Shown here in pieces: positions 13,848 to 64,000 of a stretch of 64,000 nucleotides of DNA. The stretch comes from Monocercomonoides exilis PA203. Its lineage: Eukaryota; Protista; Preaxostyla. Location: assembly GCA_001643675.2 (NCBI GenBank), contig LSRY02000014.1, forward strand, positions 1,612,001-1,676,000, given 5' to 3'. Made by a program: the position numbers and the translations under genes. The notes under the pieces were generated by a model, which was not told where the DNA came from, did not search any database, and was given only the letters and a program-made list of their open reading frames with translations. Every line of letters begins with the position of its first letter. Positions within the stretch are counted from its first letter, which is position 1.

Positions 13848-17086
<3,239 letters not shown>

Positions 17087-29600: not shown

Positions 29601-32600
29601 TTTATCTCTCAGTCATGAAAAGCTTCTTTTCAATATAATATTCCTTAACTGTTATGAAATTTCTTTCTTTCAAAGTCTCGCTATCATATGTGTAACTTTC
29701 TTATCAATTATTCTTTCGATATTATGTAGATTCTGCATTTATCTATATCTCGCGGCTATGCGCGGCCATTTTTCCTTTGTTCGGTATATGTTTTTTTTAT
29801 TATAATGTTCCTTCATTCTTTGGAAAAATATTTAAAGAATGCACTGCTTCACTTCAAAAAATATCTTTCAATTGAAATCATATTTTTTTTCTAAAAATAA
29901 TCTCACTGCAACATGTGGATCAATCTTCTTAAATTCTTGCGATATCAAGCAATTTCTTAATATATATATATCCAGCTGCAATAGGTAGTTCTTATTCCTA
30001 ATAAATAAAAGAAATATTATGTAGTTTTATTCTTTTTTAAAAGTCTATAAAATATCATATCTTCATTTTGTTTTAATATCTCACGATTTCTCATGGTTTC
30101 AGTTTCTGAAATTGTCTCGCGGAACAACGCGGCAATATATTAAATAATTATCTCACTGTGTTTTGCAGCTTTTGTTATTGATATTATCTCTTCATAATGT
30201 GCGGCTTTCTGTTCAATTCTTTCAGCTGTGCACTATCTTCTATTCCGGGTGATGTCAAACATGTTCAGATCCTGGAAATTCTTCAATAATAATTTTCACT
30301 CTTTCCAGTTTCAAAAACAGATCTAATTCTTTTCCATCACAGTCTCTGTGTTTTATTATAACAGGTTGTAGCTTCATTTTCATTGCGGACAATTAGGATC
30401 AACTTTGAATTTGAGTATTGGAGAAGTCAGATCTTAAACCACACATTAATCGCGACCAATACTCATTATCGAGGAGCAAACCTGTTTCTCCTCGTTCTAT
30501 CAACTCAAAAATGTAATTTTTACAAAATTTGTTACAAACTCTTGAAAAATCAGAAGAATAAAAATCAAGAGAAATAAATGTTTTCATCATTATGATTCTT
30601 GCTTTGATGTGAAAAATCAATGAAAGATTTATTGATTTCTACAAACTGTTTATTCTCTGACAAATGATATTTTTCCAAAGCTTTCTTTAATTCAGAATTT
30701 GAAAAATTGGATCTTTTTTCATATTTTTAAAAATTATGAATAAATTTTTTTCCATCTGTCATGTTGATATTCAGGTTCATGAAGAATATATATTTTTGAT
30801 TCAAAAAATGGAATAAAGAAAATTGATATTTGTTCTCTTTTTCTCTTCAAATTCTTAAAAAAAACCTAAATCGAAAAGTTCATAAATAAAATAACTTGTT
30901 CCTTTTGTTTGAATCAAATCCCGCTCTTTGAGAGAGAAGTGATATGAAAATGAATAAAGATACGATAAAAAATTTCAATCAAAAAATTATCAAAAACATA
31001 GATTTTTCTCATTAATCCACATAAATGAGCTTTGCCAACAATTTCACTTTCGGGATTGTTGATTTGGTGACCTTTCTGACATTTTTGTTTCCGATTTCCA
31101 TATTGAGCATCTTTTGTCTTTTTCTCTCTCTTCTTTTCTGCGATTCAAAACAGTTATTGCGAAAAGAGAATACGAAATGTCAATTAACAGACATGTCATT
31201 TGTTTGCAATTGTGTGTTTGTAATTTTGAGTGAATTTTTATTTAATCCAGAGAAACATCAAACTTCATTTGTTGCTGAAATGTTTGTTGACCCAACAATA
31301 TCGCTCCTTCCATCCTCATTCTCGTCTTCCACATCAATTGCATCTGAGACTGTCATGATCACCCCACCAACTGGAAACTTCTGAATGAATTCCCTTTTCA
31401 TCTCAACCAGTGAAGGGCGGTTGAATGGTTGGGGAGAAAACGCATGATGCACCATTTCTGTGAATGATGTTCCCATTTCCCTTTCCAAGCTTGGCCTCTC
31501 CCCTTTCGATATCTTATCTCCTGCCACCTCTGCCTCATACTCCCCAAACGGGATATCCAGTGTCAGACACTCCCACACCATCATCCCAATCGAGAATGCC
31601 ACCGACTCCTTTGTTGCTCCCATCTTCTTGTTCATCAGCAGCTCGGGTGCCTTCCACCTCAGACACTCCTTCCTGTTGTCTTCACTATCCTCAAACGCTG
31701 ATGAAGGTGGCGGTGAGTCGGTGAATCTTTCACTCATCACTGAAATATTTGACGAGGATGAAGAAACCATGGACATCGAACAGATGGATGATGAGTCGGA
31801 ATCATCTGAAGATGAGCAGTCGGAGTGGAGGGCAATGCAGATCACCATGTGCTCCGAGAACAGCACAATGTGAGGACTCAGGTTGGCCAGCGAAGGCAAT
31901 TCTTTTTCTTCATCAAAGGAGTGAAGTGCAAGATTGGCCACCCAGAACAGGATCTGTGCAGCTGTCATCTCCCTCTCCTTCAAACTCCCAATTGCCATCT
32001 CCTTCTTCTCGTTCCTCCCATGAAGCAGCATGAACAGTGAATCCCTCAGATCCACAATCAGCTTCTCATGAGGCGATGAACAGGCCATTGCATCCACCAA
32101 GTTCGACATCGATGAGGTGGTTGGACACAGATCCCCCCCCCACGAACAAATGTTGAATCTGAATCAGTTGTTGAAGTGGATGAAGTGGATGAAATGGATG
32201 GCGATGTAGTTCTCTTCCTTATCTCTTCTTCTTTTTCATCAACCTTCTCCAGCATCCATTCTGGGATCTTGTCCGAATCTCTCCCCAGGATGTATTTGGT
32301 TGAGCCACTTTCAGACAGAAGATGCTCTGATGACTCCGAATGTTCCATATTCCTCTCATACACCCTCTTCTTTATCCTTTCTTCGTTCTTCTTCTCTGCC
32401 TCTCCCTCTGCCCTCCTCCACTGCTCCTCAGGTGACATCTCCATCGTCACCATCTCAAATGCCTTCGGATCTTTTCTGATGTTATCATTCACAATCACTT
32501 CCAATTCCTCATTTCTTTCCTTCACTTTCCTCCACCGAACAACAAATAAAATAAATCCAATCAGAACAATCAACAATATCACAACAAGCACAATCACAAT

Positions 32601-35600
32601 CAACAACCAATAAGATTTTCCTTCTTTTCCTCCTTCAACAATTCTGTCATCTCCCTTTCCTTGGGTTTCGCTTCTGTTCTTCAAGATGAAAGAATCAGTC
32701 GATGAAGGAGATTCTTTCTTTCCAAACAGAACACTCACACTCACTTCTGTCTCTTCTCCTGCATTGTTTATTGTTTCAATGGGGACTTTTCCATCCACTT
32801 CATTTTCGGAGACATATCCTTCTTCATTGAATTCATATCTTTCCACAACATCTTCATCACCAACTTGTTTCACAATCTTGAACGATATGTTGCATGGAAG
32901 CAACAGCTTTCCCTTGAACCTCAGAAGAAGTTCTGCTCCCATCTCTTCTATTTCGACGATTTCCAACTCTGGAACGAAGAAGGATGTCAATCTCTCGGTA
33001 ACAATCCCGCTCAATTCACATCCTTCATTCAATATCCAAAGAGATGAATCATCCTTCAATCCATCTCCTCCTTTCAGACTCATCACGTTCAACACTCCTG
33101 AATCCGAGCAGATAATGTTTCTTCTGATTGAAGGATATTTTTCAATAAATGGATTATTGTTGTCAAACTTGCCATCTTCAATCTCCACACTTCCTCCGCT
33201 AATTGCAAGTCCACCTTCTGGTGTATTTGTTATTGTTGTATCTTTCATTTTCATATTGCAACTTATTGCTTCCAAAGCTGATCCATTCCATTTGCATATC
33301 TCATTCTCGTTGTCATTTTCATTCAAAATTCTTTCCTTCATAAATTCTCTTTCATTCGTGTTACCATCAAAAAGGCAGCTCTCAATCACTGTATTTGCAC
33401 TCTCCTTCACAGAAATGCATTTTCCCTTTCCTTCTCTATTTGTGACAAGAATATTTCTCAATGAACAATTCGTTAGCTGCACCATCTTTTTCATTTTCAA
33501 ACATGATATCAACGATGCCCAATTTTCAGTTGAAGTTATATTTGTTGCACTCATTTTTTCTATAGTCAATTGCTCTCCTTCAACTGTATTAACAAGGTTT
33601 GTCCCCATCGCGAGATCGAAAAAGTCACACGAAATCAAAGAAAGGATTGCAGATTGAAACATACAGACAGCCGAATCAGACAGTGAAAGATCTGACACCA
33701 TACAGCCCTCAAGCATGCATTCACCTCTCTCAATTCGCACAATGCAAAATGGAATATTCGCTTGTGCTTGATCTCCCATTCCCTCTGTGACTTTGGTGCT
33801 GAATGTGCAGTTTGTCACTTCCAGCAATCCTCCTTCAGGGAAAAGAAGAATAGAATGAAATGAAGCAAACTCCGGCTCAAACACAAATTTCAGTCTTGAC
33901 ATTGACACAGCGCCTGTTGTTTCTATCAGAGCCTCTCGGGAACATTCGATCGCAGGACACACTTCCACAACGCACAATCCTCGACCTCTCGAACTCAGAC
34001 TCATCTCTTCCAGCTGCAGCTCCCCGTTGATCACACTTGCTCCATCTGCAAACACAAGGCTCATGAACTCTGATGTCAGGTGCATCAGCCCATAATCAAT
34101 TGAATAGCACGGAAGAGTGTACGTGCCACACTGGCGCTCATTCGACCCATTCTCGCTCGACACAATAATCGTATCGCTCTGATGGATCGTGATGAAATCG
34201 ATCAAGTTTGTATCTCCAGTGTGCTCAGTCACATCAGCCCCATATATCGCATTCAGCTGAACATAATACTTCTCTCTCAGATCGAAATGAAACTGAGTTT
34301 CATTAATCTGGCTCGTGATGTTATAGCACTTGATAAAAATATCGTTTCCCACGCCTGCTGTGTTTGCACTCCAATTCATCTTCTCAAACACAAAATTCAG
34401 CCTTCCTGTTTCTCTGCTTCTCAAATACACTCCTCCTCCTTTCCCTTTCTGGCTGCAACAGCACCGACTTATCGTAGACTTCGAAATGTGAAATGCCCCA
34501 GACCCACTTAACACAAATAGCATCACTCCGCCTTTCTCGCATGCTTCTGCTTTGTTGTCCACAAACAAACTGTCCTCAATCCTCAGCTCAATCCCGCTCT
34601 CTCCTTTCATCTCACACACGCTTGCTCCATCATCGCTTCTTTTCATCCCCACAAAAGAGCAATTCTCAATCAAAATGCTGCTCATTTCTTTCCCATAGTT
34701 TGTGCATATTTGCTCCTCAGTTTCCTTCACTGTGAAAACACATCCTTCTGTTTCATTCAGAGATGAGCAATGAACACTCTCCATTGTGCAAGCAACACCA
34801 ACTTCATTGATCACAAAAACACTGCTTCCAACACTGCTGGAGTCCATCAACAAATCTTTCTCAACCAGTTCTCCTGCGCCCATCGCCACAAACACGCATC
34901 TGCTTGGAGTGCTTTGCTGAGCATCGGAGCGAAATGAGCATTCAGTCATTTCCAACTTCCCAGCTCTATTTGCAACTGCAGTTCTGCAAACATTATCAAC
35001 TCCAGTTCTCAAGTGAAGTGCAATGAATGTGAACGAAAGTGATTTCTGATTCACCAAATAGCAATCCAGTCCATCTTCAACTGCCTTCTCCAAAAACAGC
35101 ACAGCCTTTTCATTTTCTTCACCCATTGTCCCCGCTTTTTCAAACTTGAAGCTGGACGCATTGAATGAATCTTGAATGATGGTTGATCCTTCAATCTGAA
35201 TTGTTTTCATTTCTTCTCCGTCTTTCATGTTTTTCATTCCTTTCCAAAGTGTTCTGCATGGCTCTTCCTTGCTTCCACACCTCTCCACATCAAATCCATT
35301 CGATGAGATAAATATCTCAAATGAGTTGTATGGAACGAGGAACATAAATAAATCTTTGTCTGCATGAATGTTGTCGCTCCCAACAAACAGCAATCCGTCT
35401 TCCTTCATCGACTCATAATCAAATCTGAATGTATCTTCCCTCACTGTGCTGTTCAAATCAGCTGCCAAAATAAACATATTCTTTCCTATTTCTGCTCTGT
35501 TCTTGTCAAACTTCACACCAATATCCAGAAGCAAAGGCATGCTGTTGCTGCTGCTGCATTTCTGGCAATTCAAAAACAAAAACCCTCCTCTGCTGCGATC

Positions 35601-36771
35601 AGCTGATAGCGAGCAGACTGACGTATTAATATCCTTGATCGCAACATATTCTTCTTCTTTCAATATCACGTTCATCACACCCCCTTCATTGCCTCCGGTA
35701 TTCTCTAATTGAGAGAAGTTGCAGCGTTCAAGCTCCAGCGAAGATGAAGCCACAAACGGAGAAATAGCAAACAGACAACATTGCAGTGAGCACCCTATCA
35801 TCGAGCATGTCCCATTCGTTGTTTTCACAAGCGAGAATTCAACCACGTCTGCCACCATCACAGCAAAAGAGCAATTCTCAAATCGAAGCTTTCCGCTCGA
35901 CAAGATAAGTGACATCAATTTCGCCTCAAATGATGAAGGAATTTCAAGCTTCAGAGAAAGCAAACTGAGTGAATTGCTCGAAGCAATCACTGAAGTCATG
36001 CCACTTCCAGTTGTTGAGCTGGCAAAGTGAATGAGCTTCCATTTCACCTCTTCCTCTTCATTCACATGACCATCAAAAGCCACCTCTTCATCAAACATGA
36101 AGCAATCTTCAACTCTGCTTTCATCCATCACAACCAGTCTCCTTTCAGTTCCCTCTTCATTCCCACAAATATGGTTAATCCCACTCCACACAGAACAACA
36201 AGGAAAAATCTCGCTTCCACACCCAGCTGCATCATATCCCTCCGAAGACACAAACACTTCCTCCGCCTTTCTTTCAACAAGAAACAACCGAAGATCCACA
36301 CTTTCTTCAAACCGATCTCGATCCCTTCCTTTCATATCAACAAACACTCCTTCTTCGTCTTCATACTCAAATCCAAACCTCGCGCTTGTCACCGTTTCGT
36401 TCAGTTTCTTGCATGAGACAAACAAATCCTTCCCTTCAAACGCTTGGTTGCCTTTGAATCGCACTTCTGAAAATCTGATGTTGTTCTCGCTTTCATCCAA
36501 CACATCCAAATACACTCCTCCTCCTCTTCCTTCATTTTCATCTGCTGCACATTTCAGAAATGATACAGCTTCAACTTTGATTTGATCATTCATTCCCAAT
36601 TCGCATCTGATGCATCCACCTTGCATGCTTTCAGTTTGAATATCCTCAAAAGAGCTCTCTTCATTGATGCTCAATTTGGCTCCTCTTTTCGACACAAAAC
36701 ATGAGCTCAATCCCACAATGCATTTCGTAACTGTTGAATTTTGCAAGGACACATCAGATCCTGCTTCGTTC

Positions 36772-36842
36772 ATTGAAAAAGAAAATGTGAATCTCACTTC
36801 CTTCTCTTCTATTTACGAGAGCATCACTTAAGGGTCAGTCAC
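36772..36842 (-). repeat. DIRS 3' inverted terminal repeat (perfect 51-bp core 36792-36842 plus outer end)
   Basis: TCTCACTTCCTTCTCTTCTATTTACGAGAGCATCACTTAAGGGTCAGTCAC is the exact reverse complement of 41382-41432. Confidence 0.97.
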
Positions 36843-37029
36843 CCAACTGATCTGAAATGCAAAAATAGTAATAGATTACAACGGTGATGTGAAATAGCTA
36901 AAAAGGATAGAAACATTAAAAAACATAACAATGTTATGGCGCTCCTTACATATCACGCCTGAAGAAGAAGGAAGATGGGTCATTAACAGAATCTGTTTAT
37001 AATAAGGGTGGGAGTGTATCGAGGCGGGA

Positions 37030-37134
37030 AGAAGAGAAGGAAGTGAGATTCACATTTTCTTTTTCAATCAAAGCGCAAGCACTTTGATTCAAAAGAAAAC
37101 ATTCTCTCACTTCCTTCTCTTCTATTTACGAGAG
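37030..37134. repeat. DIRS internal complementary region (ICR)
   Basis: 37030-37068 = revcomp of 36772-36810 and 37066-37134 = revcomp of 41403-41471; the two halves overlap at AAT (37066-37068). Confidence 0.97.
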
Positions 37135-37185
37135 AGTTCCATAATTGGGAGAATACTCTGCTGTTGTTATTATTTGATTGACCTC

Positions 37186-40100
37186 TTATTTGTCATCCCT
37201 CAGCAATTGTTCGAGCTGCTCACGTTTGGCTTGCGCTCTGGTTTTAATTGTTATCTCAATTGTTTTCTTCTGGACAACTTCTCTAACTAGTCTTTTCTCA
37301 CGAAAATTCCTTCTTTCATACTCTTTATTACTGTTCTCGTCTGGCTCCTCTACGTAGTCTGGCTTTGATGGTTCTTCTTCGTCGTTGTAGATCGTTTGGC
37401 TTCTGTTGTCATATTGCAGATTAGGTTTTCCCAACTTGATCCTGATTCCTTTTTCGCTCTCGATGTTGTCAGACTTTGAGTTCAGACTGTAGTCCTCCTC
37501 ATCTTTCTCTTCGTCAGTTGACGAAGAGTCCTCAATATCTTCTGAACTTGAATTGTCATCAAAAGTAATTTTAGGTTTGCGAAGAGTTTGCAGACTTAAA
37601 GGTGATGACTGGGTCTGGGAGGAAGTTGCATTAATAGCCGCTTGATCTGCAATCACTTTCGCACAGGATGTGGCGATATCTTTTTGAAAATAGTAATTGA
37701 TAATGGTATCGCTTCGTGGAGACAGCCTTGCGAACTTTGCCACTTGCGCTATTGGTAGTCCAGCCATTGTCAATGCAGATATTGAGGCATGCTTTATCGA
37801 GTAAGGACCGAAATAATTCGGTATACCTGTCTCGTGAAGGAGATTTGCAACAAGTTTTCTCAGCACTCTTGCGGAAAGTGGAATCTTTGTGCGATCGTTA
37901 ATAAACAAGTGGTCAGGGTTGTCTTGAAGTTTGCTTATTCTGGACCACAATTCACACACTGCTGAGGCAGGACATATTGAAGGAGTATCTGTGAGAAACG
38001 GTATTATTATGTCTGTTCTTTCGGGCCCTGTTTTCAGCGAAGTATCCAATGCAATTGAATCTTCTCTCACTGCAGAATGTTTCAGACTAATCCGCTCGAG
38101 CTCGGTGAACCGGCAGGCGGAGAATAGCATGCAAAGACAAATTGTTTTCTTCGTGAGAGTAGTGAAGGATAAGTTCGCGTTCTCGCCTAGCCCCGATATA
38201 TAATCAAGAAGTATTTTGGGGTTCCATATATCAGGCTTCTTTTTCTTCTTCCTCCTTTCCAATCTTTTAAATGATCGGAAGAGAAGCTTCATAAGCGGGT
38301 AATCTCCCAAACTTCTCTCGAATAATAATTGAGAAATGAGAGAGATGGCAGATCGTATTTTACAAAGGGATTGCTCCTTCAGCCCCTTGTTGAAAAGCTT
38401 AAGGAAAACATCGGCACATCTAACGACCCAATTGAACCAATCTCCAACAGAAAGACCATAGCCGCAGTTTGTCCACTGGTCTCCGAAATGAGCATAACTG
38501 AGTAAGTACCCATGCCACGTCGAAGGCGAAAGACTGGATTTGCACAGATCACATATATCCATTGGAAATCCTCTTGTTTGCAAAACTCCTTTGAACCAGT
38601 GTTCTCCATTGATCGCTAAGGATTCATCAGTACAACTCGAAGCTTCCCTGGTGGCAGGCAAGCATCCATCCTCTTCATCCATGGTCCCGGGGTAAGAAGT
38701 TCGCTCTGGCTCTTCCACATCCATTCTATATGGGTCGTTCTTTTCAACAACGGCTCCCATATTTGTCCCTTCCAATCGGGAAGAAGGAGAAGACCTCGAG
38801 CTTGTTCGAGAATCATTTTCCTGATTGTCGGAAGAATGAGAGGAATTGGAGGATGAGCAAGAACTGTCTCTCCTCGCCAAGGCTGCTGCAGACCGTCTTC
38901 GTTTATCGGGCTTCCTGGCCCGCACCATCTGCTCACTTTCTTGTTTTGTTTTGTGGCGAAAGCGTCCAACGTTATGTTCAATCTCATCTTCGTTACAAGC
39001 TCCTGGTAGGATTCTTGCTTTATCTGATAGTCGCCTCCCCTTTCTAGCCTGGAAAGAGAATCGGCCCTTTCGTTTCTTTGACCGGGGATGTGTTGCGCTT
39101 TCACTTGAATCTGCATCGTGTGCGTTTGTTTCCAAATCTTTAATAGGAGTCTTCTCAAATTCGCTCCTGCCCGCCACCTGTTCAGGTTGAACACCGATGT
39201 TGAGTTGTCCGATCTGATAAGTAGTTTGTGGATGCGATTGGATAACAGAATTGGGGAAAAGTGAGTTAGAGCAGACAAAATTGCGAACATCTCCCGATAG
39301 TTTGAACTTTGGTTTCTTTGCCAATAGGGGAGTCTGCGATGAAAATCCAAAATACTGTTTCCGATTCTTAAATAAGCTCCCACAGCTTTTCTGGAAGCAT
39401 CCGTCGTAAGTGTTGCATCTGGAAGAAAGAGTGGGCACAGTTGCCTTGGTGTGTTGGTTTTCAATCTCGACATCCATTTGGTTAGATTGTGGAGTATGGA
39501 CGGGTTGATCCTCATCTTCCCTCTCCATCCTACCATCGAAACCATTTTGTTTAAGGTGCGATAAAGATCTGAAAGAAACAGAGAAGCTTCTCGAACCACG
39601 AACCTTGTAGCGTTCAGCTTTCCAATGAACGCTGCAAGGTCTCTTACTCTCACTTCTTTCGCTCTGAGGGACCTCCTCCTCCATCTGGTACATTCCTTTA
39701 TAAGTTCTTTCGTTCTCCTCATTTCCAGAGCTACATTGAACTGGTGCGTGTTCCAATCGAAACCCAAATAGGTGAAAGTTTGCGAGGGAATCAAATGACT
39801 CTTTTCTGTATTTACCAGAAGACCAAGGCTTTCGAAAAGAGAAACGACTTTCTGAGTTATCCATTTTAATTTCTTTTGATCTTGGTGAAGAAGAATAATA
39901 TCGTCGAGGTACGCGATTGCTCTTACGTTCCATCGCTCCCGGATGAATTGTATCACCTTCCTCATGATTTTTGTAAAGATTCTTGGAGAATCTTTGTATC
40001 CAAAAGGCATTCCGTTGAAACAGTAGTAATTTTCGTTGAATTCGAACGCAAGAAACGGCTTGAAGTTGTCGTCCACTTTCACTAAATAGTAGGCCTGGCT

Positions 40101-40659
40101 TAGGTCTAAAGTTGTTGCATAATCTCCTCTTGTTATAATTCGTTCTAGTGACCTGTAATCCTCCAGTTTGAAATGGATTGACTTCGTTGCATTGTTCAAC
40201 GCTCTGCAATCGATAATTTGTCTCCATCCCCCTTGTTTTTTCTTTATCACAAACACTGGATTTAAATGTTTCACCTTTCTTTTCTGTATTTTTTGTATTA
40301 TGTTCGTTTCGAGCTGATTCTGGATCAGCTTTGCCATCGCTTTGGTAGCTTCCCCTGATTGATGGGGGCTGTATGTTTCCATTTTTGAGTTTAGTAATTT
40401 CTCCCTGGCTTTCCTGTTTTTCCAAATTGGAATGACGCCTCTTTTTACCAACTTCTCTCCATCTATCATTCTCCACGCTTCTCGAAAATATTCCGTTCTT
40501 CCTCCAACAATTGAAGGTGACTGGCTTAGTTGGTTCTCGTTCCCCTGGATCGCGGTTGAGAAGGACTTCTGCTGTATGTATTTGAGGATTTTCTCCCTGC
40601 CCACGACCGGGGACCCGAACGAAAAAACTGAGGGCGTTGGTAGCTTTCATGTTTTCCAT
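37186..40659 (-). CDS. DIRS ORF3: tyrosine recombinase (C-terminal part, ~38600-37650) with a long N-terminal extension overlapping the RT ORF
   Basis: SLSPSTWHGY, LTKKTICLCMLFSACRFTEL, SLKT, CPASAV, PYSIKHASIS, ARLSPRSDTIINYY; first ATG at 40659. Confidence 0.9.
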   Translation of the reverse strand: MENMKATNALSFFVRVPGRGQGENPQIHTAEVLLNRDPGEREPTKPVTFNCWRKNGIFSRSVENDRWREVGKKRRHSNLEKQESQGEITKLKNGNIQPPSIRGSYQSDGKADPESARNEHNTKNTEKKGETFKSSVCDKEKTRGMETNYRLQSVEQCNEVNPFQTGGLQVTRTNYNKRRLCNNFRPKPGLLFSESGRQLQAVSCVRIQRKLLLFQRNAFWIQRFSKNLYKNHEEGDTIHPGAMERKSNRVPRRYYSSSPRSKEIKMDNSESRFSFRKPWSSGKYRKESFDSLANFHLFGFRLEHAPVQCSSGNEENERTYKGMYQMEEEVPQSERSESKRPCSVHWKAERYKVRGSRSFSVSFRSLSHLKQNGFDGRMEREDEDQPVHTPQSNQMDVEIENQHTKATVPTLSSRCNTYDGCFQKSCGSLFKNRKQYFGFSSQTPLLAKKPKFKLSGDVRNFVCSNSLFPNSVIQSHPQTTYQIGQLNIGVQPEQVAGRSEFEKTPIKDLETNAHDADSSESATHPRSKKRKGRFSFQARKGRRLSDKARILPGACNEDEIEHNVGRFRHKTKQESEQMVRARKPDKRRRSAAALARRDSSCSSSNSSHSSDNQENDSRTSSRSSPSSRLEGTNMGAVVEKNDPYRMDVEEPERTSYPGTMDEEDGCLPATREASSCTDESLAINGEHWFKGVLQTRGFPMDICDLCKSSLSPSTWHGYLLSYAHFGDQWTNCGYGLSVGDWFNWVVRCADVFLKLFNKGLKEQSLCKIRSAISLISQLLFERSLGDYPLMKLLFRSFKRLERRKKKKKPDIWNPKILLDYISGLGENANLSFTTLTKKTICLCMLFSACRFTELERISLKHSAVREDSIALDTSLKTGPERTDIIIPFLTDTPSICPASAVCELWSRISKLQDNPDHLFINDRTKIPLSARVLRKLVANLLHETGIPNYFGPYSIKHASISALTMAGLPIAQVAKFARLSPRSDTIINYYFQKDIATSCAKVIADQAAINATSSQTQSSPLSLQTLRKPKITFDDNSSSEDIEDSSSTDEEKDEEDYSLNSKSDNIESEKGIRIKLGKPNLQYDNRSQTIYNDEEEPSKPDYVEEPDENSNKEYERRNFREKRLVREVVQKKTIEITIKTRAQAKREQLEQLLRDDK
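38616..40646 (-). CDS. DIRS ORF2: reverse transcriptase - RNase H - Dam-like methyltransferase domain
   Basis: RT: VGGRTEYFREAW, PVFVIKKKQGGWRQIIDCRALN, LDLSQAYY, MPFGYKDSPRIF, YLDD. RNase H: TTDAS, NYREM, IRSDN, HIPGQRNERADSLSR. MT: LDAFAT...DGLQQPW...AHPPI. The frame opens at 40646; first ATG at 40469. Confidence 0.97.
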   Translation of the reverse strand, partial: KLPTPSVFSFGSPVVGREKILKYIQQKSFSTAIQGNENQLSQSPSIVGGRTEYFREAWRMIDGEKLVKRGVIPIWKNRKAREKLLNSKMETYSPHQSGEATKAMAKLIQNQLETNIIQKIQKRKVKHLNPVFVIKKKQGGWRQIIDCRALNNATKSIHFKLEDYRSLERIITRGDYATTLDLSQAYYLVKVDDNFKPFLAFEFNENYYCFNGMPFGYKDSPRIFTKIMRKVIQFIRERWNVRAIAYLDDIILLHQDQKKLKWITQKVVSLFESLGLLVNTEKSHLIPSQTFTYLGFDWNTHQFNVALEMRRTKELIKECTRWRRRSLRAKEVRVRDLAAFIGKLNATRFVVREASLFLSDLYRTLNKMVSMVGWRGKMRINPSILHNLTKWMSRLKTNTPRQLCPLFLPDATLTTDASRKAVGAYLRIGNSILDFHRRLPYWQRNQSSNYREMFAILSALTHFSPILLSNRIHKLLIRSDNSTSVFNLNRWRAGANLRRLLLKIWKQTHTMQIQVKAQHIPGQRNERADSLSRLERGGDYQIKQESYQELVTKMRLNITLDAFATKQNKKVSRWCGPGSPINEDGLQQPWRGETVLAHPPIPLILPTIRKMILEQARGLLLLPDWKGQIWEPLLKRTTHIEWMWKSQSELLTPGPWMKRMDACLPPGKLRVVLMNP

Positions 40660-41365
40660 ATCTGCTTTTCCCAAAGGATTTGGAATTAAATGAGAACGAA
40701 GTCCATCTTTTCGCTGTTGACTGTGAGGTTTTCCTGACCTCTTCCAATAAATCACTTTGCCTTTTCGTTAAAAGCGGTGATGCTGAATCCTCTTTCATTC
40801 TCGCTGCTTCGGTAAATCCAAATCTCGCTTGGATGCGAGCGTTTCTGGCTTCTTTCAAGGCTTGTGCAAGCAATAAACATGCTTGCGCTACGGCACCCTG
40901 AGCTTCATCATCTTTAGTTTTCGTATGAGCAAATAAAATAAGTTTCATTGCGGGGTAAAGAAACGTCTCACATCTTTCTCCTGCTTGATCTAAGGCGTCT
41001 TTGTACGGACTGGTAGTCCTTACAAAAGGTGGAGGCGCATTAGGGAGGAAAGGGGATAAATCTTCTGTCTTCAACGAAGCAACCAAGTCATTTATCTCAT
41101 GTTCCGGTAATGGAAGATCATATAACGATAATTCCGGGGGTCTTCCAAAAATTTTTAGAAATGAATTTTCCAGTGGAATTTCTTCTTCTTTTTCTTCGCC
41201 AAGGGTGGTAGAAGGTGGGGAGAGTGAGGATGAAAAAGAAGAAGGTTGGGAAGCGGAAAAGGGTCCGGGAAATGTCGGAAACCCGCTTGTTGGACCACCA
41301 GGCAGCGCAGCTGCGCTCGGTTCGGCCGCAAGTCCTGTTCCCAGAGGATTGTTAGGGATCATCAT
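40526..41365 (-). CDS. DIRS ORF1, gag-like protein (279 aa)
   Basis: First ORF just inside the 5' ITR; Pro/Ser-rich N-terminus, helical core and basic C-terminus. Assigned by position. Confidence 0.75.
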   Translation of the reverse strand: MMIPNNPLGTGLAAEPSAAALPGGPTSGFPTFPGPFSASQPSSFSSSLSPPSTTLGEEKEEEIPLENSFLKIFGRPPELSLYDLPLPEHEINDLVASLKTEDLSPFLPNAPPPFVRTTSPYKDALDQAGERCETFLYPAMKLILFAHTKTKDDEAQGAVAQACLLLAQALKEARNARIQARFGFTEAARMKEDSASPLLTKRQSDLLEEVRKTSQSTAKRWTSFSFNSKSFGKSRYGKHESYQRPQFFRSGPRSWAGRKSSNTYSRSPSQPRSRGTRTN

Positions 41366-41381
41366 TTTTTGATCAGTGATC

Positions 41382-41471
41382 GTGACTGACCCTTAAGTGA
41401 TGCTCTCGTAAATAGAAGAGAAGGAAGTGAGAGAATGTTTTCTTTTGAATCAAAGTGCTTGCGCTTTGATT
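41382..41471 (-). repeat. DIRS 5' inverted terminal repeat with terminal hairpin extension (41448-41471)
   Basis: Core 41382-41432; outer 24 nt AATCAAAGTGC-TT-GCGCTTTGATT are self-complementary. Confidence 0.95.
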
Positions 41472-44400
41472 ACAAGTCCAACACCGTTTGTATGCATATC
41501 ATCGATTGTGCAGTTTTCAAAAGCTGTGCTTCCACCGCTGCACACTGCAATCCCACTTCCTGCAAAATGCACTCCTTTCATCACAGCCCTGTCAAAATGA
41601 ACAAATCCTCCTTTCGCAGCAACAATCCATTTCCCACATTCATTTTGCGCACTTCCACAGCCAGAAAATGAACAATCAACAAAAGTGCATTGCCCCACCC
41701 TCACTTCCACAACTGACTGTTTTTCTGCTGGATTTATCGGTGCTCGCGGAAGAACAAACTCAAGAACTGAAAAAATTAAATATGTCAATGCCTCTCCCTC
41801 TGTTTGCTCAAATTTTCCTTCCTCCCCAACAACCATTTTCTGTGCCTCATCATTCCCTTGAAAGGTCAGTGATTTTCCATTTCTATTGATTGTCCCATTC
41901 ACTTCTGCCTCCCCTTCCAGCTGCATGATCGCATGCTCATCCTTCATCCGAGCAAATCCCACATCAACAGACAAGCAAGGGTTTTCCTTCAATCCACAGT
42001 TCTGCCCGTCATTCCCTGTTCCATCCACAAACATATACGATCCCAAAGATGGGAACAAATAGCTTATGATAGACCCTTCCTTGCTTGCATCAGAAAGGTC
42101 TTCAACCCACATCAGCTTCTGAACTGTCGCATTCGTGGCTGTTCCATACCACAATGTCGGAAGAAGCATCAGCCACGGTGACTCACACACCAGATACACA
42201 TCATCTCCCTTTTCTGCCACGCTGTTTCTGAACTCATTGTTTTTCATCGAATATGTGATGTTCGTGCTCTCAAACCTCACATACAGCCCTCCTCCCTTTC
42301 CACTTCCAGATGGCACAGCGCACTTGTCCATCTTATTGCACTCAAACATAAACTTCCCTCCTTCTCTCACAATCATCACCATTCCTCCTCCCATCGAACC
42401 ATCTGCCTCACAACCACACTTCTCAAAAGTGCAGTTTGTAATCTCAATGCATTCTCCATTTTTCACATTCCCATTCATCACTCCTCCATTTCCATTATTT
42501 CTCGTTATCTCCAAAAATGTGTTGTTCCTCATCGTCAGGCTCATTCCACATCCCTCCTCTCCATTTCCAATCAGAATCATATTCCTGTCAGCAAAGTCTG
42601 TTTCTTTCAGCGTTGAGTTTGCAATCACAACTTCCTTCCCTCGCTTCAATTCTACCACACTCCCTCCTCCTTCCCTTGTAGTATTCCTAATTGTCACTTC
42701 ATCAATCAGACCTTCCACACCAACACCATCAATCACAATCATCCCTTTTCCAAGTGTCTCAAAGTTCCCGAATTCACATTTCACCATCTCAATCTTTCCT
42801 CCTTTACAATAAACACATGTTGTCTCAACTATCCCTTCTTCGGCTGCAAATGAGCATCTCTCAATTCTCAAAATGTTGCCACTGCACAGAAACACACTTT
42901 CCTTTGTCGAGTCTGCAAACCTTGAAACAACAAATGCTAAATTGCAAAACTTCACATTTTGCATTGTTTCAATCATGCTTTCCTTTTCCCTATCACCTTC
43001 TCCTGATTCATTCACAACAACTCGTTGCATCTGCATCTCTCCGTCAATCATCATTGCCTGTGAATCAACAACAATTTCTTCTTCAATTGAAAAAGGCGAC
43101 AGCAGACGCAACACAGCCAATGATGTTCCAAACAAGGCTTTCCCTGCATATTTCAGTGTGCTGCACGAAAAATCAAAATACCCACATTTTGCGTGATCCA
43201 TTCCTCCATCTCTCCCATGAACATATCCAATTGTGGGCTTTTCGCGAAACAGCACCACAAGCGGAATCAGCTGTCCGATATTTCTATTTTCCATTCCCAT
43301 CAACTCTTGCAAATCCGGATTCTTGTCAGCATCAATCTCAAACGAAAAATTGAACGATGATTCATTCACAAGCTCTGACAAGCTCTCACACTCTATCATC
43401 ACATTCTTGCCTCCAAAACTTGCTGAATTAGCTGCCTCTTCCGTTCCAAAAGTCAACTTCGTCATTACAAAATCTCTTCCCCCTTCTTCACACCTCAGCA
43501 TCACCCCTCCTCCATATCCCCCAACTGATCCTTCACCAATGGCTGAACACTTCCCAAAATATGTCTCACTCTCCAAACTTCCCAGCCGCATCACTCCTGT
43601 TCCTTTCAGAATCACGCTTATTCCTCCCCCACATCCCTTTGATGTTCTACAGCTTTCAATCTCAACATCATAAATACTCATCATGCACTCATCACCAATC
43701 ACTCCATTCACAACACTTCCATTCCCTTCCAATTCATTCACCCCCTGAAATGAGCTGTTTGCAATCGAAAGATCCCTTCCTTCTCTGTCACTAATGAATC
43801 CGCAATTTTTGTTTCCACAGCTTTGTGCTGTCACATTAGCCAGCAAAAGTGAATTCTCGGAGGTGTACTCAATTAGACCATTTGCGTCCATCATCTGTAC
43901 ATCGCTGATAAAGACATTATTTATCAATGCTTTTCCATTTCCTTTCAAGCACAGGATGGGAGCTGATGCAAACTGCACAGCTTCTATCCTGAATCCGACC
44001 ATTGAAAGACTTCCACTTTGAAGGTGAATGAACGAATAATTGCACCGAGTCACAGAAGGCTCGCACTCAATTGCACATTCTTCAATTTGCAGCTCTCCAC
44101 CAGCTCCTGATACTTGAAATACACTTGTTTGAGCAGATGGAAGCGATCCAGTAAGAATGTGAACAAACAGCTCAAACTTGACTCTCGAAAGCACTTCAAT
44201 CACACATTCACTTTCAGTCTCATTCCCCTTCATTTCCATCCTCGTTCTTGTTGCAACCCCACAAAACTCGTATCCTTCACTTTGGCTCAGTGTCACACTC
44301 TCTGAAAATGAATACGTTGCTCCAAATCGCACTCTTCTTTCTTTCCCCATCACTCTCTTCAATGCATAATCAACTGTTTGGCACCTGAACTCTTCAAATC

Positions 44401-47400
44401 CACACACAACAACATCCACTCCACTGTTGCTCATGAACATCGCCTCAGGATCGTCTGTAAGATAATATTTCAGTGGAATGATTAAGTTTCCCCACTTTGA
44501 GTCAATCCCCATCGCCAACGAGCTGAGATCAGAAATGTGAATTGGAAATTGAATCTGTTCTTTTCTCACACTTGTTGCCAAATCTGGAGATAACACAAAC
44601 AGATCTGCTCCATGCTCTGCCTCGTTCAATCTGAAAACAAGTGTTTTTGACAGCTCAACTCTTGCCTCAGAATCCAAAAGATGAAGCAGCATCCCTCCTC
44701 CTCGCCCATTCGTTCCGCTTTCTGAGGGTGCACTGCATTCTTCAAACGTAGTCGATGAAACATACAACTCGCTCGCCTTTCCCATCACCGCACACATTCC
44801 TCCTCCTCTATTGCCATTTCCACCCACTCTGCATCCTTTCAACGAGCAGTTCTCAATATCAACAACAAACCTGCTTGCCTCATCTGCTTGCATGGAAATG
44901 CTTGCCCCATTTCCAGCTGTTCTCGTGATGTTATCAAATGATGCGTTCTTCAGCTTCAACAATGAGCACGCCTCAATGTGAATAATTCCACTCTTCTCCA
45001 AAGCACAATCTCCTAATGAACTATTTTGTATTGCTGCTGAACTGCTTGTGTCCATTCTGATCACTCCTCCAGTCCCGCTTGCTCTCACATTGTTCATCGT
45101 TAATTGATCAATTGTGCATTTTGTACTTCCATCCACAAGCACAATGTAACTTCCAAGCAACACATCTCTCTCAGCACCACATCTCAGCCTCAGCATCTGC
45201 ATATACCCACCGCTCGCTCTGATAAATGCATACCCAATCTCATTAGCATTGCCCATCCCATCAATCGCACAGTCAATAATTCTCATGTCTCCGGCCAACG
45301 AATGTACAAATGTGGAACGCCCTGAAATCGATTGCCCCAGCTCAAAGGTGATGTTTGTGAGTGTTGTCGTCACATTGTTTTTCACCAACCAGTCATGCTC
45401 TTTTGGTTCTGTTGTCTCCACTCGCAATCCAATAGCTTTGTCACTCGAATCTATCTCATATGACTGCTCGCTCAAAGTTATTTCCTCCTCAAATCCAAAT
45501 ATACCGCAAGCCTCACCACTCGTTTCGAGTTGGGAAACCGAAACTCAGCAGCTTTTTCAATTGTATTGCACGGGTAATCAGCAAAACCGCACAGTCTGAA
45601 ATCATTTCCATTTGCTTTCCCACTCACATATGCAGGTGGCTGAAAAGTTCGCAGAAACAAGGCAAGTGAAATGATCATCTCAGGATTATCTCTTTCAATT
45701 CCGCTCAACTCACTGAAGTCTGTCGCATTAATCCCAATTTGGGGATGAAATCCAATTGAAGCACTGTTGATCACAGTTGATAAATCCTGCGCTTCCACAA
45801 ACACATTCTTTCCTCTCCAGGCATCACATTCATCAAAGACACAAAACTCAATCCTGAAGCTGCATTCGTTGGTCAGGCATGTCAGATGCATCGCCCCTCC
45901 TTTTCCTTTCTTTGATTCATCAGCAGGCGATGAGCACGATTCAAACCCGACATTTGAATTGTCTCCAATTCGCAATTCGCTTCCTGTTTGCATCGAAATA
46001 TGCATCCCTCCACCATTGCCATTTGCACAAGAGCATCTTTTCAGCGTTGTGTTTGATAAGCCAAAAGAGCACCCAGAATCCAATGAACTGGAGAAAATAG
46101 ACCCACTTCCAGTGGTTCTTGTGATATTCTCAAAGGTCACATTCACTATTCTTGGAGAATTTCTCGAAGACAGTTCAACTTCACTGAAGATTGGCGCTGA
46201 AAGAACCATATTCCGAATCTCCACATTTCTCAGTGAAATGCAATTCATATTCAACACAAATGGTGATGTATCTATTTCACTCCCTCCTGACTCAGATCCT
46301 GGGGATAAAATGAGAACATCAGACAAAGAAAGCACTCCTGCGGAAGAGCTCACCACAAAAAGTCGTGGAGATGGAGGTGCTGTTGAATCATGTTGGATTT
46401 GAATTGTTGTTATCATCAAACTCCCACTCGACACGCTGAATAAAACTGAAGAGGCTTCCAACGATTGTGTTCGAACAATTGAGTTAAGATGGTTTTCTCC
46501 AGAAACTTCAATGTGCTTTTCTCCACACTCAATCGAAGCACGTGGAGCAAATGTGGAAGCCAACAGCTTCACTCCTTGAACCGTGGCATATCCTGAATTG
46601 CTCACAGCTCTTTCAATCGTTTTGCAAGGTTTGTCTTCCGATTTCCCACAAAGCAACTCAGCATCACTTCCGTTGCTGGAAACATAACGCTTCAATAACC
46701 CCTTTCCAAGCCAGAAATCATAATCTGTTTGACTGCCATTAAACCAAACTCTTTGGCATTCCGTGGTTGTGAACGATAATTCAAATGGACAGCCAATCAA
46801 ATTTGGATAAACAACGTAAACATCATGACCATTTCCATTTCCTGCAGTGTTTCTATCAAAAAAGCAATATTTCATAAAAATAAAATGTTCGCCTAATTGC
46901 ATGTTTTTGCTTTGATATATATGAAATGCTCCACCATTATTTCCAGCAATATTCCCCTGGAATTCAGATTCTTTCAAAAGAAATGAATTTTCAATTTCGT
47001 CATGAACAAATAAGGCTCCTGCGAAAGATCCTGCTTTGTTCTTAAAAAATGTGCATTTATCAACTAAGAATGGATCAACTTTCTTTCCGTCTCTTCCAAA
47101 AATCGTCACCAACCTCATAGCACCTGCATAATAGTCGCTAGAGTTACAATCATCAAAAAGACATCCAGAGACCAATATAAAACCCTCTGAAAAATTATGA
47201 CATTGAAGAGCACCAACCCCGTTTGAAGTTGAATAGCAACAAGAAAAATTCGAATCTTCGATAATCGCACCAAAAATTGCATCAGTGCAAATTGCACCAA
47301 TATGAGGAGCTGTGCAACTTCACATATGAATACGAATTGTTGTTTATAAACAAATAAAATGAAGAAATACAATAAAATGAATAAAAAGAAATGGAAATAA

Positions 47401-50400
47401 TAATAAAATGAAATTATTAATCTTTATCATTTGTGGAATAATATAAAAAGCATACGAAATAAACTCACTCCTTCGAGCGGTGAGTGTTATTGGTAATATT
47501 GATGCAAGAATTGCTCCTCCACTTTCCGGAGAAATGCATCCATCAAATGTGTCGTCTTCAAATGTTTCTGATTGGGTCAGAACTTGGTGCCCAGATTCTC
47601 CTGAATAGTGTGCATTTGCATTTGCATTTCTGATGCATCGTTGATATGTGTTGTTGGATGAGCACAATGTTGTGCCTTCAGTGTTTATTGATCGAATAAC
47701 ACCTCCATAAAACACATCGCAAACTTCACAGAACGAGCATCCCGAAATCGAATTCAGACTCTCTGAAATAGAAGAAGGAATTCTGATTGTTTGTGCTGAA
47801 GCGATCGAAATGTTGCAAAATGAAGATCTTGCTAAATCCACATTTTCCTTTCCTGATGAAGAAAGAAACGGAGAAGATTGCAGTTGCAGAGACGAAAAAG
47901 CAGAATTCGATATGCTCACTCTGTTTGATGTTTCGTGTGTTAAAAACGCTTCAGTTGGATGGGAAGCTATCAATGAAGGAATGCATTTTTCAGCAGCAGA
48001 TGTTGTGAGTGAAATGTTCTCACAACACAAGCAACCACCAGTTTGCGCGAATGAAGGGATGCATCTTTTTGCTGAATATTTCATCGAGCAGCAGCTCAAA
48101 GACACAGAAGATTCGTTGATGAAAAACACTGAACTTTTCTCTCTTGAATAGATCTCTGTGTTCCACACTGAAAAAGTGGAATTCATTATGTGCATGCTCA
48201 CATCAATTCGAGTCGAACTCCCGCAGCTTTGACTCTCTCTCCCATCATTTTTCTCCATATCCCCTTGTGGATTGCCGTTATTGTGCAGCATCTGCAAAGA
48301 ATTTGGGGGAATAAATAGAAGCAAATTTGATGTTTCCCTTGCTTCCTCACTCTCCTTTGTCCAGAAATTATCCGTCATTCCTCCACATGTTGCCATTTTG
48401 GTAATAAAAGGCAGAAGCACAGCAAAAAGATAATTTGATGCCTTCATGTTCAAGAAAGCGCTCTTCAAAATCTTGAATAATTCTGATCATGCCCATAACT
48501 GCAATTGCGATGTTTTTTCTCCCTTTCTTGCTTCAACAATTGCTTTTGTTGCTTCTCTCTTCAAAAAAGGCAAAAAGGATAAAATGTTATCTTTATGAAG
48601 AAAAAATATATGAAGAATCCAATTACAAAAATGAGTGAATATATGAAAAATAAATAGAAAAGAAAAGAAAAATATTTCCATTGCATACCATTTTAATCCA
48701 CATGAAATGTATTCTGAAAGGATGAGAAATGATCCCAAATCGAAATGATATTGAATAGATTTTGCAAACAAATACTGGAAAAAAACATGGAGGAATTGAA
48801 TTCCATCATAAGAAGCAAACTCTCCAGCAAAAGGAGAGATCATGAGCGTTGAAACAGATGAACAGGGGAAATGTGAGTTGAAAATGAAGATGCGCTTCGA
48901 TTTTGCAAAAGAAACTCAAAGCAGAAAAAAGGCACTGTTGATCGTTCGAAGAAGATGATGATTGAGAAAATTGTGCCTCTTCCGCTCAAATCTGAAAAAA
49001 TGATCTTCTGAAATCACTTTCCTTCAAAATTCCTTTCCATTTATTTTTCAACTTTCAACAGAAATTTTCTTGTTTGACTCTGTATTTTTCTTACTTTCTT
49101 TTTCTGTTTCACTGTTTCTTTTTTCCTTTTTCCTTTCTTCATCAACAATTTGTTCATCTTCTTCACAAGCATTCTCTTCATCATTTGATTGCAATATCTT
49201 CATATTTCAATATCTTTGACTCAATGCCTGCATGTTCTGCTCCTTCCTTCTCTTTCTCTTTCGAAATAAACAGCATCCACTCATTCCTGCAAAAATCATT
49301 TTTTTTATCTCTTTATCTTGATAAAGTGGTGCATTCTCCTTGAATCTTTTTGATGGAGGTGTTCAGAGCATTTTTCTTGCTGAATCTTCCACATCTTAAC
49401 TGAGAGAAAGCTGCTGAAAATCGATGTTCAAATAGCTGGTTGAAGAAATGAAAATGTGAGATGAAACTCGCCAAAAGCAGAAAAAGCAGTCCAAGAAATT
49501 GAATCTCTTCAATGCATCAGCACGAGCCTGCAAGAATGCACAACGACAACATCAAATGTTATTGTCATTTATTCTATTTCTTGGGAAGATAAAATATACC
49601 ACCATGAAAAAGAGAAGGCAATAATGAATAAAATGCGAGGAAATCAAAATTTGAATAAATATTTGAATAATTACTCAAAATGAAGTTCAATACAAACCTC
49701 ACAAGCACTTCAAGCAAACAGTTTCTTGCAAAAGATATTCTAAATTCGGTTTTCTAAAAGCTTTCACCAATGTTGCGATTGAACGGAAATTCAACTTTGC
49801 TGTTGCCTTTTGATTGGCCAATCCTTTCTTATTTTTCTGATATTCTTTTTTATTGTTTTGTTCCGTTTTAAGTTCATTTCTTTCGTCAATTTCTTTGATC
49901 TTCTTGAAATTCAGTCTGCCCTTATGCTTTTTTCCTCGTTCGTCAAACAGCTCCCTTTTCAAAAGTTCTTTTTATCAGATCAATGATTTCTTTGCTTTGC
50001 TTTTCCTTTGCTTTTCCATTCAAATCATAAGCCCATTTTCCAATATCCTCATTTGTCTCGTTTTTTTCTCTTTTGTATCATTCACAATTCTTTTGGAGGC
50101 ATTCCATTCAATGCCCTTCTTCTGTTCAACTTAGCAGCAAGCCTTCTTCGCGAATGACTTTGAGGCGAAATTTGACTTTTCTTCTGAAAAAGAACTTATC
50201 AATGGAATATGAATAAGAAGAAAATATATTGCATTCACCAAAACAGAAAATAAGAAATTGAAAAATAGCAATTAGTTGCAAACTTTGATTTCTCAGCCAC
50301 CAAAGGAAAATGGTAATTTGTTAAAAAAAAATGGTTGTTGTCTGATGAAAATGAATAATGTCAGTGATAAATCCAATGAAGATGGCACGAATCAATAAAA

Positions 50401-63561: not shown

Positions 63562-63602
<41 letters not shown>

Positions 63603-64000
63603 TTCTTCTTCTTCTTCTTCTTCTTCTTCTTCTTCTTCTTCTTCTTCTTCTTCTTCCTCCTCCTCCTCCTCCTCCTCCTCCTCCTCCTCCTCTTCTTCTT
63701 CTTCTTCTTCTATTTTCAAATCCAACATTAATCAAAAAACCCCTCAAAATGGCTTATTTTTCGGAAAAGATGAACAAACATCTTATTCGATGAAAGGAAT
63801 AATTGATCCATACAAACACATGCAAACAGAAGAAATGAGGCAAAATCCTTCTTCTTTTGAAGACGAGCATTATTTGCCTTGTTTGAAAGGAAGTTGTTCA
63901 GATTGTATTGTTGATTCTTCTGATGTAATAGAAGAGAAAAAAGTGATTCGAAATGAAGGGAAAGAAGAAGAAGAAGAAGAAGAAGGAGGAGGAGGAGAAA
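58096..64000 (+). CDS. Giant (>1,960 aa, runs off window) low-complexity protein with AT-hook and RG repeat
   Basis: Frame 1 from ATG 58096 (MDYSTQHLLSFL) reads sensibly at all spot checks to the window end, and the track lists no terminated ORF in this frame. KPKRRGRPPTK at ~62944-62976, (RG)n at ~63270-63366. Confidence 0.8.
63511..63711 (+). repeat. Coding (TCY)n tract encoding 67 consecutive serines
   Basis: Tandem TCT/TCC codons in frame 1. Confidence 0.93.

Follow-up and report, generated by a model that had tools for sequence, protein, structure and literature searches.

An intact DIRS1-like retrotransposon, probably of recent insertion, in a giant surface-protein gene of Monocercomonoides exilis

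Among the major classes of retrotransposons, the DIRS elements are, to our knowledge, the one least understood. DIRS-1 of Dictyostelium discoideum is the founding element, and the integration model of Cappello et al. (1985) has been tested in PMC7192593. The internal complementary region (ICR) is essential in Dictyostelium, no experiment has addressed the specificity of DIRS recombinases, and the circular intermediate itself is in dispute (PMC7192593). A species-specific trinucleotide was proposed as the determinant of the integration site (PMC3266345) and the proposal was later restated (PMC7192593). DIRS1-like elements have not been confirmed in Excavata, where only degenerate matches in Naegleria are reported (PMC3266345). 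The genome paper of Monocercomonoides exilis does not mention DIRS elements (PMC8767320), and our literature searches returned nothing on DIRS in Monocercomonoides or in metamonads. Here we analyse a stretch of 64,000 nucleotides from M. exilis PA203 (contig LSRY02000014.1), called the window below. We hold with high confidence that positions 36772-41471 of this window are a full-length, intact DIRS1-like element, which was recently inserted in a giant surface-protein gene and which integrates through a single shared A within a loose target motif.

Structure and coding frames of the element

The assignment as DIRS1-like is based on structural and domain criteria. The element measures 4,700 bp when both flanking trinucleotides are included, and the net insertion is 4,697 bp. 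The following features are identified, with all coordinates given in the window.

36772-41471, minus strand: whole DIRS1-like element; its ends recur in about ten full-length copies
36792-36842 and 41382-41432: core of the inverted terminal repeat (ITR), found by repeat search
41403-41471, minus strand: 5' terminus in element orientation, 69 nt, exact reverse complement of ICR positions 37066-37134
36772-36842: 3' terminus in element orientation, made up of the core 36792-36842 and a terminal extension 36772-36791
37030-37134: ICR in two halves, 37066-37134 matching the 5' terminus and 37030-37068 matching the 3' terminus, with 0 mismatches
40526-41365, minus strand: open reading frame (ORF) 1, gag-like, 279 amino acids, ATG start
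38616-40604, minus strand, -1 frame relative to gag: pol ORF with reverse transcriptase (RT), RNase H and a methyltransferase-like tail
about 39759-40247, minus strand: RT, RVT_1 match with E 3e-31, YLDD motif
about 39048-39419, minus strand: RNase H, matches to RNase H families with E 2e-6
about 38619-38978, minus strand: methyltransferase-like tail, Dam match with E 0.005 (below threshold), LDAFAT..HPPIPLI motif
37186-40755, minus strand, +1 frame relative to gag: long recombinase frame, stop-free over 1193 codons, first ATG at 40659
37576-38658, minus strand: tyrosine recombinase proper, two domains, Pfam match of the catalytic domain at about 37729-38163

An initial annotation, made from the letters alone, had described an intact DIRS1-type element with three open overlapping ORFs, identical ITR cores, an ICR without mismatches to either end, and ATT at both 36772-36774 and 41469-41471. 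All of this holds. The three frames are stop-free on the minus strand, the ITR cores are 51 nt long and 100% complementary, both ICR halves (69 nt and 39 nt) are exact, and ATT is read at both positions. The type is likewise borne out by the combination of ITRs and ICR with gag, RT (YLDD), RNase H, a methyltransferase-like tail and a Cre-like tyrosine recombinase.

Copies of the element were sought by a DNA search of the whole genome (82,301,135 bases in 101 contigs). About ten full-length copies at about 98% identity are found, plus one copy from which the ICR is deleted. Diverged subfamilies are present at 84%, 76%, 73% and 65% identity. Eight copies form a burst, with only 1-5 substitutions between them in 4.7 kb. 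Since about ten full-length copies and several diverged subfamilies repeat this set of termini, ICR and ORF layout, chance is excluded as its origin.

The ICR half at 37030-37068 pairs without a mismatch with the 39-nt terminus at 36772-36810. The two halves share a 3-bp overlap, which reads AAT on the plus strand, and the ICR is present in all full-length copies. In every copy the termini are fully complementary to the ICR, the outermost base excepted. At one internal terminal base the window lineage differs from its sister copies, and here terminus and ICR have changed together. This co-variation and the kept complementarity fit a regeneration of the ends templated by the ICR. The only long direct repeat is 30 nt (36792-36821 and 37105-37134) and represents the ITR core motif repeated within the ICR. 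Split direct repeats, the hallmark of PAT, Ngaro and VIPER elements, were not found in the repeat search, the terminal repeats being inverted.

The first 24 nt of the element (41448-41471) form a perfect hairpin with an 8-bp stem (AATCAAAG..CTTTGATT) and an 8-nt loop. The hairpin is mirrored within the ICR, and its pattern, with changes in the loop, also heads other subfamilies. Its outermost base pair uses a target-derived base and is thereby broken in copies that start with CAT or GAT. The hairpin was considered as a lox-type crossover site, with inverted arms around a spacer, and was rejected, as the boundary between element and flank falls outside it.

The gag-like ORF1, which is without a Pfam match, is uninterrupted in 10 of 11 copies. 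In pol, the sub-threshold Dam match is found at the same position in relatives, with E 0.0011 in the 65%-identical subfamily and 0.026 and 7e-5 in two distant relatives, and the nearest Atlas protein clusters combine RVT_1, RT_RNaseH and Dam. The closest homologues of pol are M. exilis proteins named 'putative reverse transcriptase'. Outside M. exilis the named relatives are animal RT+Dam or RT+Phage_integrase proteins with 25-30% identity, and Ty3-like Pol proteins score far lower. Three further relatives from short contigs (P0019, P0020 and P0022; NCBI, Logan, JGI) align with 94-97% of the length of pol at 35-44% identity and are thereby much closer than the animal proteins. They probably represent related elements in other oxymonads or gut protists.

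The long recombinase frame spans the entire pol ORF in another frame and carries the tyrosine recombinase at its C-terminal end. The recombinase is called from a Pfam match, the predicted fold and conserved motifs. The Phage_integrase match has an E value of 4e-6 (27.0 bits, with a cut-off of 27.1). In the AlphaFold2 model of the region the predicted local distance difference test score (pLDDT) is 63.5, and Cre, XerH, XerA and lambda Int make up all the best Foldseek matches of the model (probability 1.0, E 4e-5). The motifs ACRFTELER, LKT and YS(I/L)K and a C-terminal Y are conserved. No rve or DDE domain was found in the Pfam search of the element proteins, and sequence searches of the PDB with the recombinase region and the methyltransferase-like tail gave chance matches only. 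A word-based protein search with the recombinase returned M. exilis proteins only, all named 'uncharacterized protein MONOS_*', in agreement with the oxymonad host that the initial annotation had considered probable. The arrangement of gag, +1 recombinase frame and -1 pol frame with a long overlap is kept in the subfamilies with 76% and 65% nucleotide identity.

Host gene, junctions and unoccupied target sites

The element lies between two open frames of one host gene, and a third ORF of the same protein family is found further upstream.

41472-45475, minus strand: host gene upstream of the insertion, open frame of 1341 amino acids with beta-helix-like repeats and GGG(V/M) motifs
32058-36771, minus strand: host gene downstream of the insertion, 1571 codons, ending in a transmembrane helix and a basic cytoplasmic tail
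45478-47175, minus strand: further upstream ORF of the same protein family, 565 amino acids in another frame, adjoining the 1341-aa ORF

The interrupted host protein has no Pfam match. Its family is huge: a piece of 300 amino acids gives 4,917 first-look candidates, and the scored relatives are mostly found in open frames of 2,500-4,500 amino acids. The two halves of the host gene were searched and translated separately, and the joined frame was checked by arithmetic, by script and against paralogues. Codon arithmetic on the two host ORFs places codon starts at 41473 and 36770. Deletion of 4,697 bp leaves GGA CTT GTA ATG AAC GAA, and the 1341- and 1579-aa frames become one frame of 2,920 amino acids. 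The five closest paralogues (90-96% amino acid identity, 2.5-7.6% DNA divergence) are uninterrupted, with exactly 3 nt between the same flanks, and read ..GVGLVMNEAGS.. at this position. The arithmetic and the five paralogues thus agree with the fusion through G-L-V-M-N-E that the initial annotation had read, and removal of 4,697 bp restores the junction to the codon.

The wider statement of that annotation, that removal restores the host gene exactly, is correct for the junction and the local frame but not demonstrable for the whole gene, which has an extra frame break near 45476-45480. Since the 565-aa ORF of the same family lies in another frame, the reading frame of the host gene is broken at least once more, some 4 kb upstream of the insertion. 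This ORF is probably part of the same gene across the break, which could be a real frameshift or a nanopore error. Upstream of it, an AT-rich, stop-containing stretch (47176-47343) is followed by an ORF of 374 amino acids (47344-48468); the stretch could be an intron.

Element and host gene are both members of multi-copy families and the assembly is nanopore-based, which would offer a long-read assembler the opportunity to misplace a repeat copy into a surface-protein gene. However, the window copy is at least 74 substitutions away from every other copy and cannot be a collapsed or borrowed one. Furthermore, both junctions obey the junction rule of the family at every base, and a single reading frame runs on from one flank into the other. 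An assembly artefact is extremely improbable, and we treat the locus as a genuine insertion of the DIRS1-like element into the host gene.

Across 11 copies the 5' junction reads xAT-CAAAGCG, with A at x in eight copies, C in two and G in one. The 3' junction reads CTTTTTC-AAy, with T at y in four copies, A in two and G in five. Junction pairs in copies other than the window copy include CAT/AAT, CAT/AAG, GAT/AAG, AAT/AAA and AAT/AAG, and the xAT...AAy pattern holds in other subfamilies too. The unoccupied state of the target was inferred from paralogues of the multi-copy target genes and is readable for seven copies, as listed here.

L002: unoccupied AAA; junctions AAT / AAA
L003: unoccupied CAT; junctions CAT / AAT
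L004: unoccupied AAT; junctions AAT / AAT
L005: unoccupied CAG; junctions CAT / AAG
L006: unoccupied AAT; junctions AAT / AAT
L008: unoccupied AAG; junctions AAT / AAG
window copy: unoccupied TAT (by paralogy); junctions AAT / AAT

For L004 and L008, the unoccupied duplicates match both flanks at 99.7-100% identity along 1.2-1.5 kb, with exactly 3 nt separating the flanks. At L004/L051 (C33:409581-422795), it is an inverted duplicate about 5 kb away, 99.7-99.9% identical, that holds the unoccupied site. A single-A rule fits six of the seven pairs. The left junction consists of the target base x, the A and the T of the element, the right junction of the A of the element, the A and the target base y, so that target and element have just the central A in common. 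The unoccupied site has 3 nt, whereas the occupied site has 3 nt, the element and another 3 nt that share one base; thus no duplication occurs beyond the shared A.

The initial annotation had placed the crossover at a shared AAT trinucleotide and had suggested a genome-wide table of copies and flanks as a check. In this table the same termini recur, but no AAT is common to the flanks. The junctions and unoccupied sites of the other copies differ and have only the middle A in common, so the shared trinucleotide is not sustained. One may still suppose that integration requires AAT in the target with a crossover of 3 bp, the other flanks having mutated later or having come from a mismatched 3-nt heteroduplex. 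The literature model has a 3-bp junction (PMC3266345, PMC7192593). AAT is found on both sides in 3 of 10 independent copies, two of which have unoccupied paralogues with AAT, and 16 of 21 5' junctions have A at -1, suggesting that likeness to AAT helps. However, with burst copies so close to each other (1-5 substitutions), seven later mutations exactly on the outer junction bases are not credible, and the flanking bases agree with the unoccupied sites CAT, CAG, AAA and AAG. A 3-nt heteroduplex is contradicted by L005 (CAT/AAG, target CAG), L011 (GAT/AAG) and L014 (GAT/AAA). We consider a requirement for AAT very unlikely and retain the single shared A.

Two heteroduplex schemes were tried for the strand exchange and rejected. 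A 3-nt heteroduplex predicts AAT or the full target triplet at each junction, and L005, L011 and L014 fit neither. A 2-nt heteroduplex fits these three copies, but its predicted reciprocal class (3' xAy with x other than A) is never seen. The window copy is explained by neither scheme.

Among the 14 aligned target sites, 12 have a pyrimidine at -2 and 10 an A at -1; position 0 is A, +2 is G in 9 sites, +3 is A in 13 (background of A 0.295) and +4 is A in 9. The loose motif Y-A-A-N-G-A-A resembles the junction of the element itself, C-A-A-T-C-A-A-A. For the window copy the initial annotation had read the target as cttgt-AAT-gaacg, which is unproven at the nucleotide level as all five paralogues read TAT. 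With TAT in the paralogues and AAT in the window, the window gene may have had either triplet before the insertion, and both give V-M in the protein. Compared with all five paralogues, private differences of the window gene are found at 5 of 997 sites, and at 4 of about 332 third codon positions (about 1%). Two private differences are located within 6 nt of the insertion (36766-36774, 41469-41473), namely A versus T before the shared A and C versus T five bases downstream. A private change is also found 3 nt from the junction of L003. Such changes near the junction may come from integration-associated repair, from selection of a better-matching target, or from chance.

In the model of Cappello and of Goodwin and Poulter, a sub-genomic transcript would be reverse-transcribed. 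The ICR, as the complement of the junction between 3' end and 5' end (...CTTTTTC-A-A-T-CAAAGCG...), would be the template on which the missing ends are restored. The element-encoded Cre-like recombinase would then join this end junction to the chromosome conservatively, without target-site duplication. In the M. exilis copies the strand exchange resolves at the single A common to junction and target. Tentatively, we propose that the recombinase might need just one shared A in a degenerate Y-A-A-N-G-A-A site, with no match of a trinucleotide, and might prefer genes of one surface-protein superfamily. The idea of a species-specific trinucleotide is only approximately true for the M. exilis elements.

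If the single-A reading is true, these copies provide the first natural set of exact occupied and unoccupied site pairs for DIRS elements, and the 3-bp model of DIRS integration needs revision. Very young copies, multi-copy targets and at least two diverged functional lineages together make the integration model checkable base by base. The main value of the element is as a natural test set for the mechanism of DIRS integration.

Age, activity and genomic setting of the copies

The window copy differs from the burst copies by 74-76 substitutions (1.6% diverged) and represents a separate lineage; the corresponding number for L006 is 24. All three frames are intact only in the window copy and L006. 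These two intact copies were compared by their synonymous and non-synonymous differences, for which the neutral expectation is roughly 1:3. The ratio is 21:18 in RT, 9:4 in gag and 13:7 in the non-overlapping part of the recombinase. This synonymous excess indicates that the lineages diverged as functioning elements, under purifying selection. In the overlapping N-terminal part of the recombinase frame, 8 synonymous and 33 non-synonymous differences are found, and judging from these counts the constraint in the overlap is carried by the pol frame.

In the window copy 0 mismatches are found in 159 paired positions of termini, ITR and ICR, and none of the three element frames contains a stop. 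The two halves of the host gene (8.7 kb) are also without stop or frameshift. From the matching repeats, the open element frames and the open host halves we infer a divergence well under about 1% since the insertion. The youth of the family, as proposed in the initial annotation, is supported by the eight burst copies. On this sequence evidence the family appears to be active, or to have been so very recently, and the window copy may be competent.

An intact copy could nevertheless be dead, if the family has stopped or if this lineage is silenced or is without a working recombinase through K in place of R, and the near-identity of its copies could come from segmental duplication or gene conversion. 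The recombinase motif is indeed non-canonical, L007 and L010 are one insertion within duplicated DNA, and palindromic or inverted duplications are present around L004 and L009. On the other side, nine other copies have unrelated flanks and lie in different genes, at different positions and in both orientations, with unoccupied paralogous counterparts. Most of the M. exilis recombinase homologues that were examined keep the same Lys at the second-Arg position (P0012 has N), and purifying selection has acted between the lineages. A dead copy is unlikely in our view, and a recently active DIRS1-like family remains our preferred interpretation.

Several observations weigh against an intact element that integrates by the single-A rule. 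Most burst copies carry frameshifts, and 9 of the 15 indels are 1-nt changes of homopolymer length. Errors of this kind are typical of nanopore assemblies; the burst copies are therefore quite possibly intact. The recombinase has a K at the expected position of the second catalytic Arg (YSIKH), its Pfam score is 0.1 bit under the cut-off, and its structural model is of moderate confidence. The target motif is based on 14 sites only. Finally, the window copy falls off the single-A rule if its paralogues represent the pre-insertion state (TAT in 5 of 5, versus AAT/AAT).

Two copies show rearrangements of their own. The burst copy L011 (C8:328085-335471) is missing about 313-321 bp, the ICR included, which agrees in size with the 313 nt by which the two units of the 30-nt direct repeat (36792-36821 / 37105-37134) are spaced. 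The loss looks like a repeat-mediated deletion, which would disable the regeneration of the ends. Beside the 5' end of L009 (C1:246824-254518), 1,025 nt are a 100% identical inverted copy of the DNA 476-1,500 nt past its 3' end.

After precise removal of the element, 8 of 10 independent young copies are found in long open frames, and in five cases the frame stays open for 500 codons or more to either side. Homology to the host protein of the window is seen in the flanks of L002-L007 and L011, at different positions and in both orientations. In total, 8 of the 10 independent young copies lie inside one superfamily of giant (2,500-4,500 amino acids), repeat-built, membrane-anchored surface proteins. 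The enrichment is marked at any plausible share of this superfamily in the genome (assumed as 10-30%). It may come from a target preference or from tolerance of insertions in a redundant family. If the preference is true, DIRS insertion is a recurrent source of knock-outs in the surface-protein repertoire. The surface-protein family probably makes up part of the 35% 'unclassified repeats' reported for the genome. For the host, the elements themselves likewise contribute to this large unclassified fraction, and they disrupt members of the giant surface-protein family.

Elsewhere in the window, a strand-skewed pyrimidine-rich stretch is found at 2001-10000, with GC skew and AT skew of about -0.5, and a degenerate TCT/TTC-type array of about 1.1 kb at 5832-6923. 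Long AAT, AAAT and CTT microsatellites are located at 14391-14510, 15772-15908 and 63509-63711.

Comparison with known systems

Every structural and domain feature of DIRS1-like elements is found here, and none of those of PAT, Ngaro or VIPER elements. They comprise ITRs, an ICR with a 3-bp overlap, RT and RNase H, a methyltransferase-like C-terminus of pol, a tyrosine recombinase and the lack of a target-site duplication. A further feature, expected from the literature hypothesis and not a criterion for classification, is a target trinucleotide identical to the circle junction; the seven readable targets do not show it as a rule, being CAT, CAG, AAA, AAG, AAT twice and, by paralogy for the window copy, TAT, with a constant central A only.

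The element is similar to DIRS-1 of D. discoideum in its length of about 4.7-4.8 kb, in its ITRs and in having, shortly before the 3' repeat, an ICR complementary to both termini. The order of frames is the same, gag being followed by a recombinase frame that overlaps the RT/RNase H/methyltransferase frame, and a target-site duplication is absent from both. In contrast, the ITRs here have a perfect core of 51 nt and measure about 70-90 nt in all, compared with about 330 bp in DIRS-1, and about 190 nt lie between ICR and 3' repeat. The insertions are found here in surface-protein genes, whereas DIRS-1 inserts in other DIRS copies or centromeric clusters, and the host is a metamonad.

With the members of the DIRS1-like superfamily in the catalogue of Piednoel et al. 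(2011, PMC3266345), the element shares the order lITR-lICR-rICR-rITR, the terminal extensions and the 3-bp overlap of the ICR halves. A long ORF overlap, as seen here, is present in about half of the catalogued elements, and variable recombinase motifs, with K-ending variants such as 'SDLK', are also reported (PMC3266345). The termini on the coding strand are different: they are AAT here, with an ICR junction ATT, while NTT is found at both ends in 23 of 28 catalogued elements (PMC3266345). Furthermore, the identity between target and element can be read here from unoccupied sites, and it is limited to one base.

Ngaro and VIPER elements are without the methyltransferase-like domain and usually without ORF overlaps (PMC3266345), both of which are present here. 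PAT, Ngaro and VIPER elements share with our element RT/RNase H, a tyrosine recombinase and a presumed conservative integration. Their repeats are split direct repeats, in contrast to the ITRs and ICR of the M. exilis element.

Recombinases of the Cre, Xer and lambda Int type exchange strands across an identical spacer of 6-8 bp. The recombinase of the element resembles them in its predicted two-domain fold. It differs in the identity apparently required between the partners, which is one base within a loose similarity of 7-8 bp, and in the second catalytic Arg, which seems to be replaced by Lys. Taken together, the element differs from the described members in its short ITRs, its AAT termini, the Lys at the second-Arg position, its targeting of genes and its new host group.

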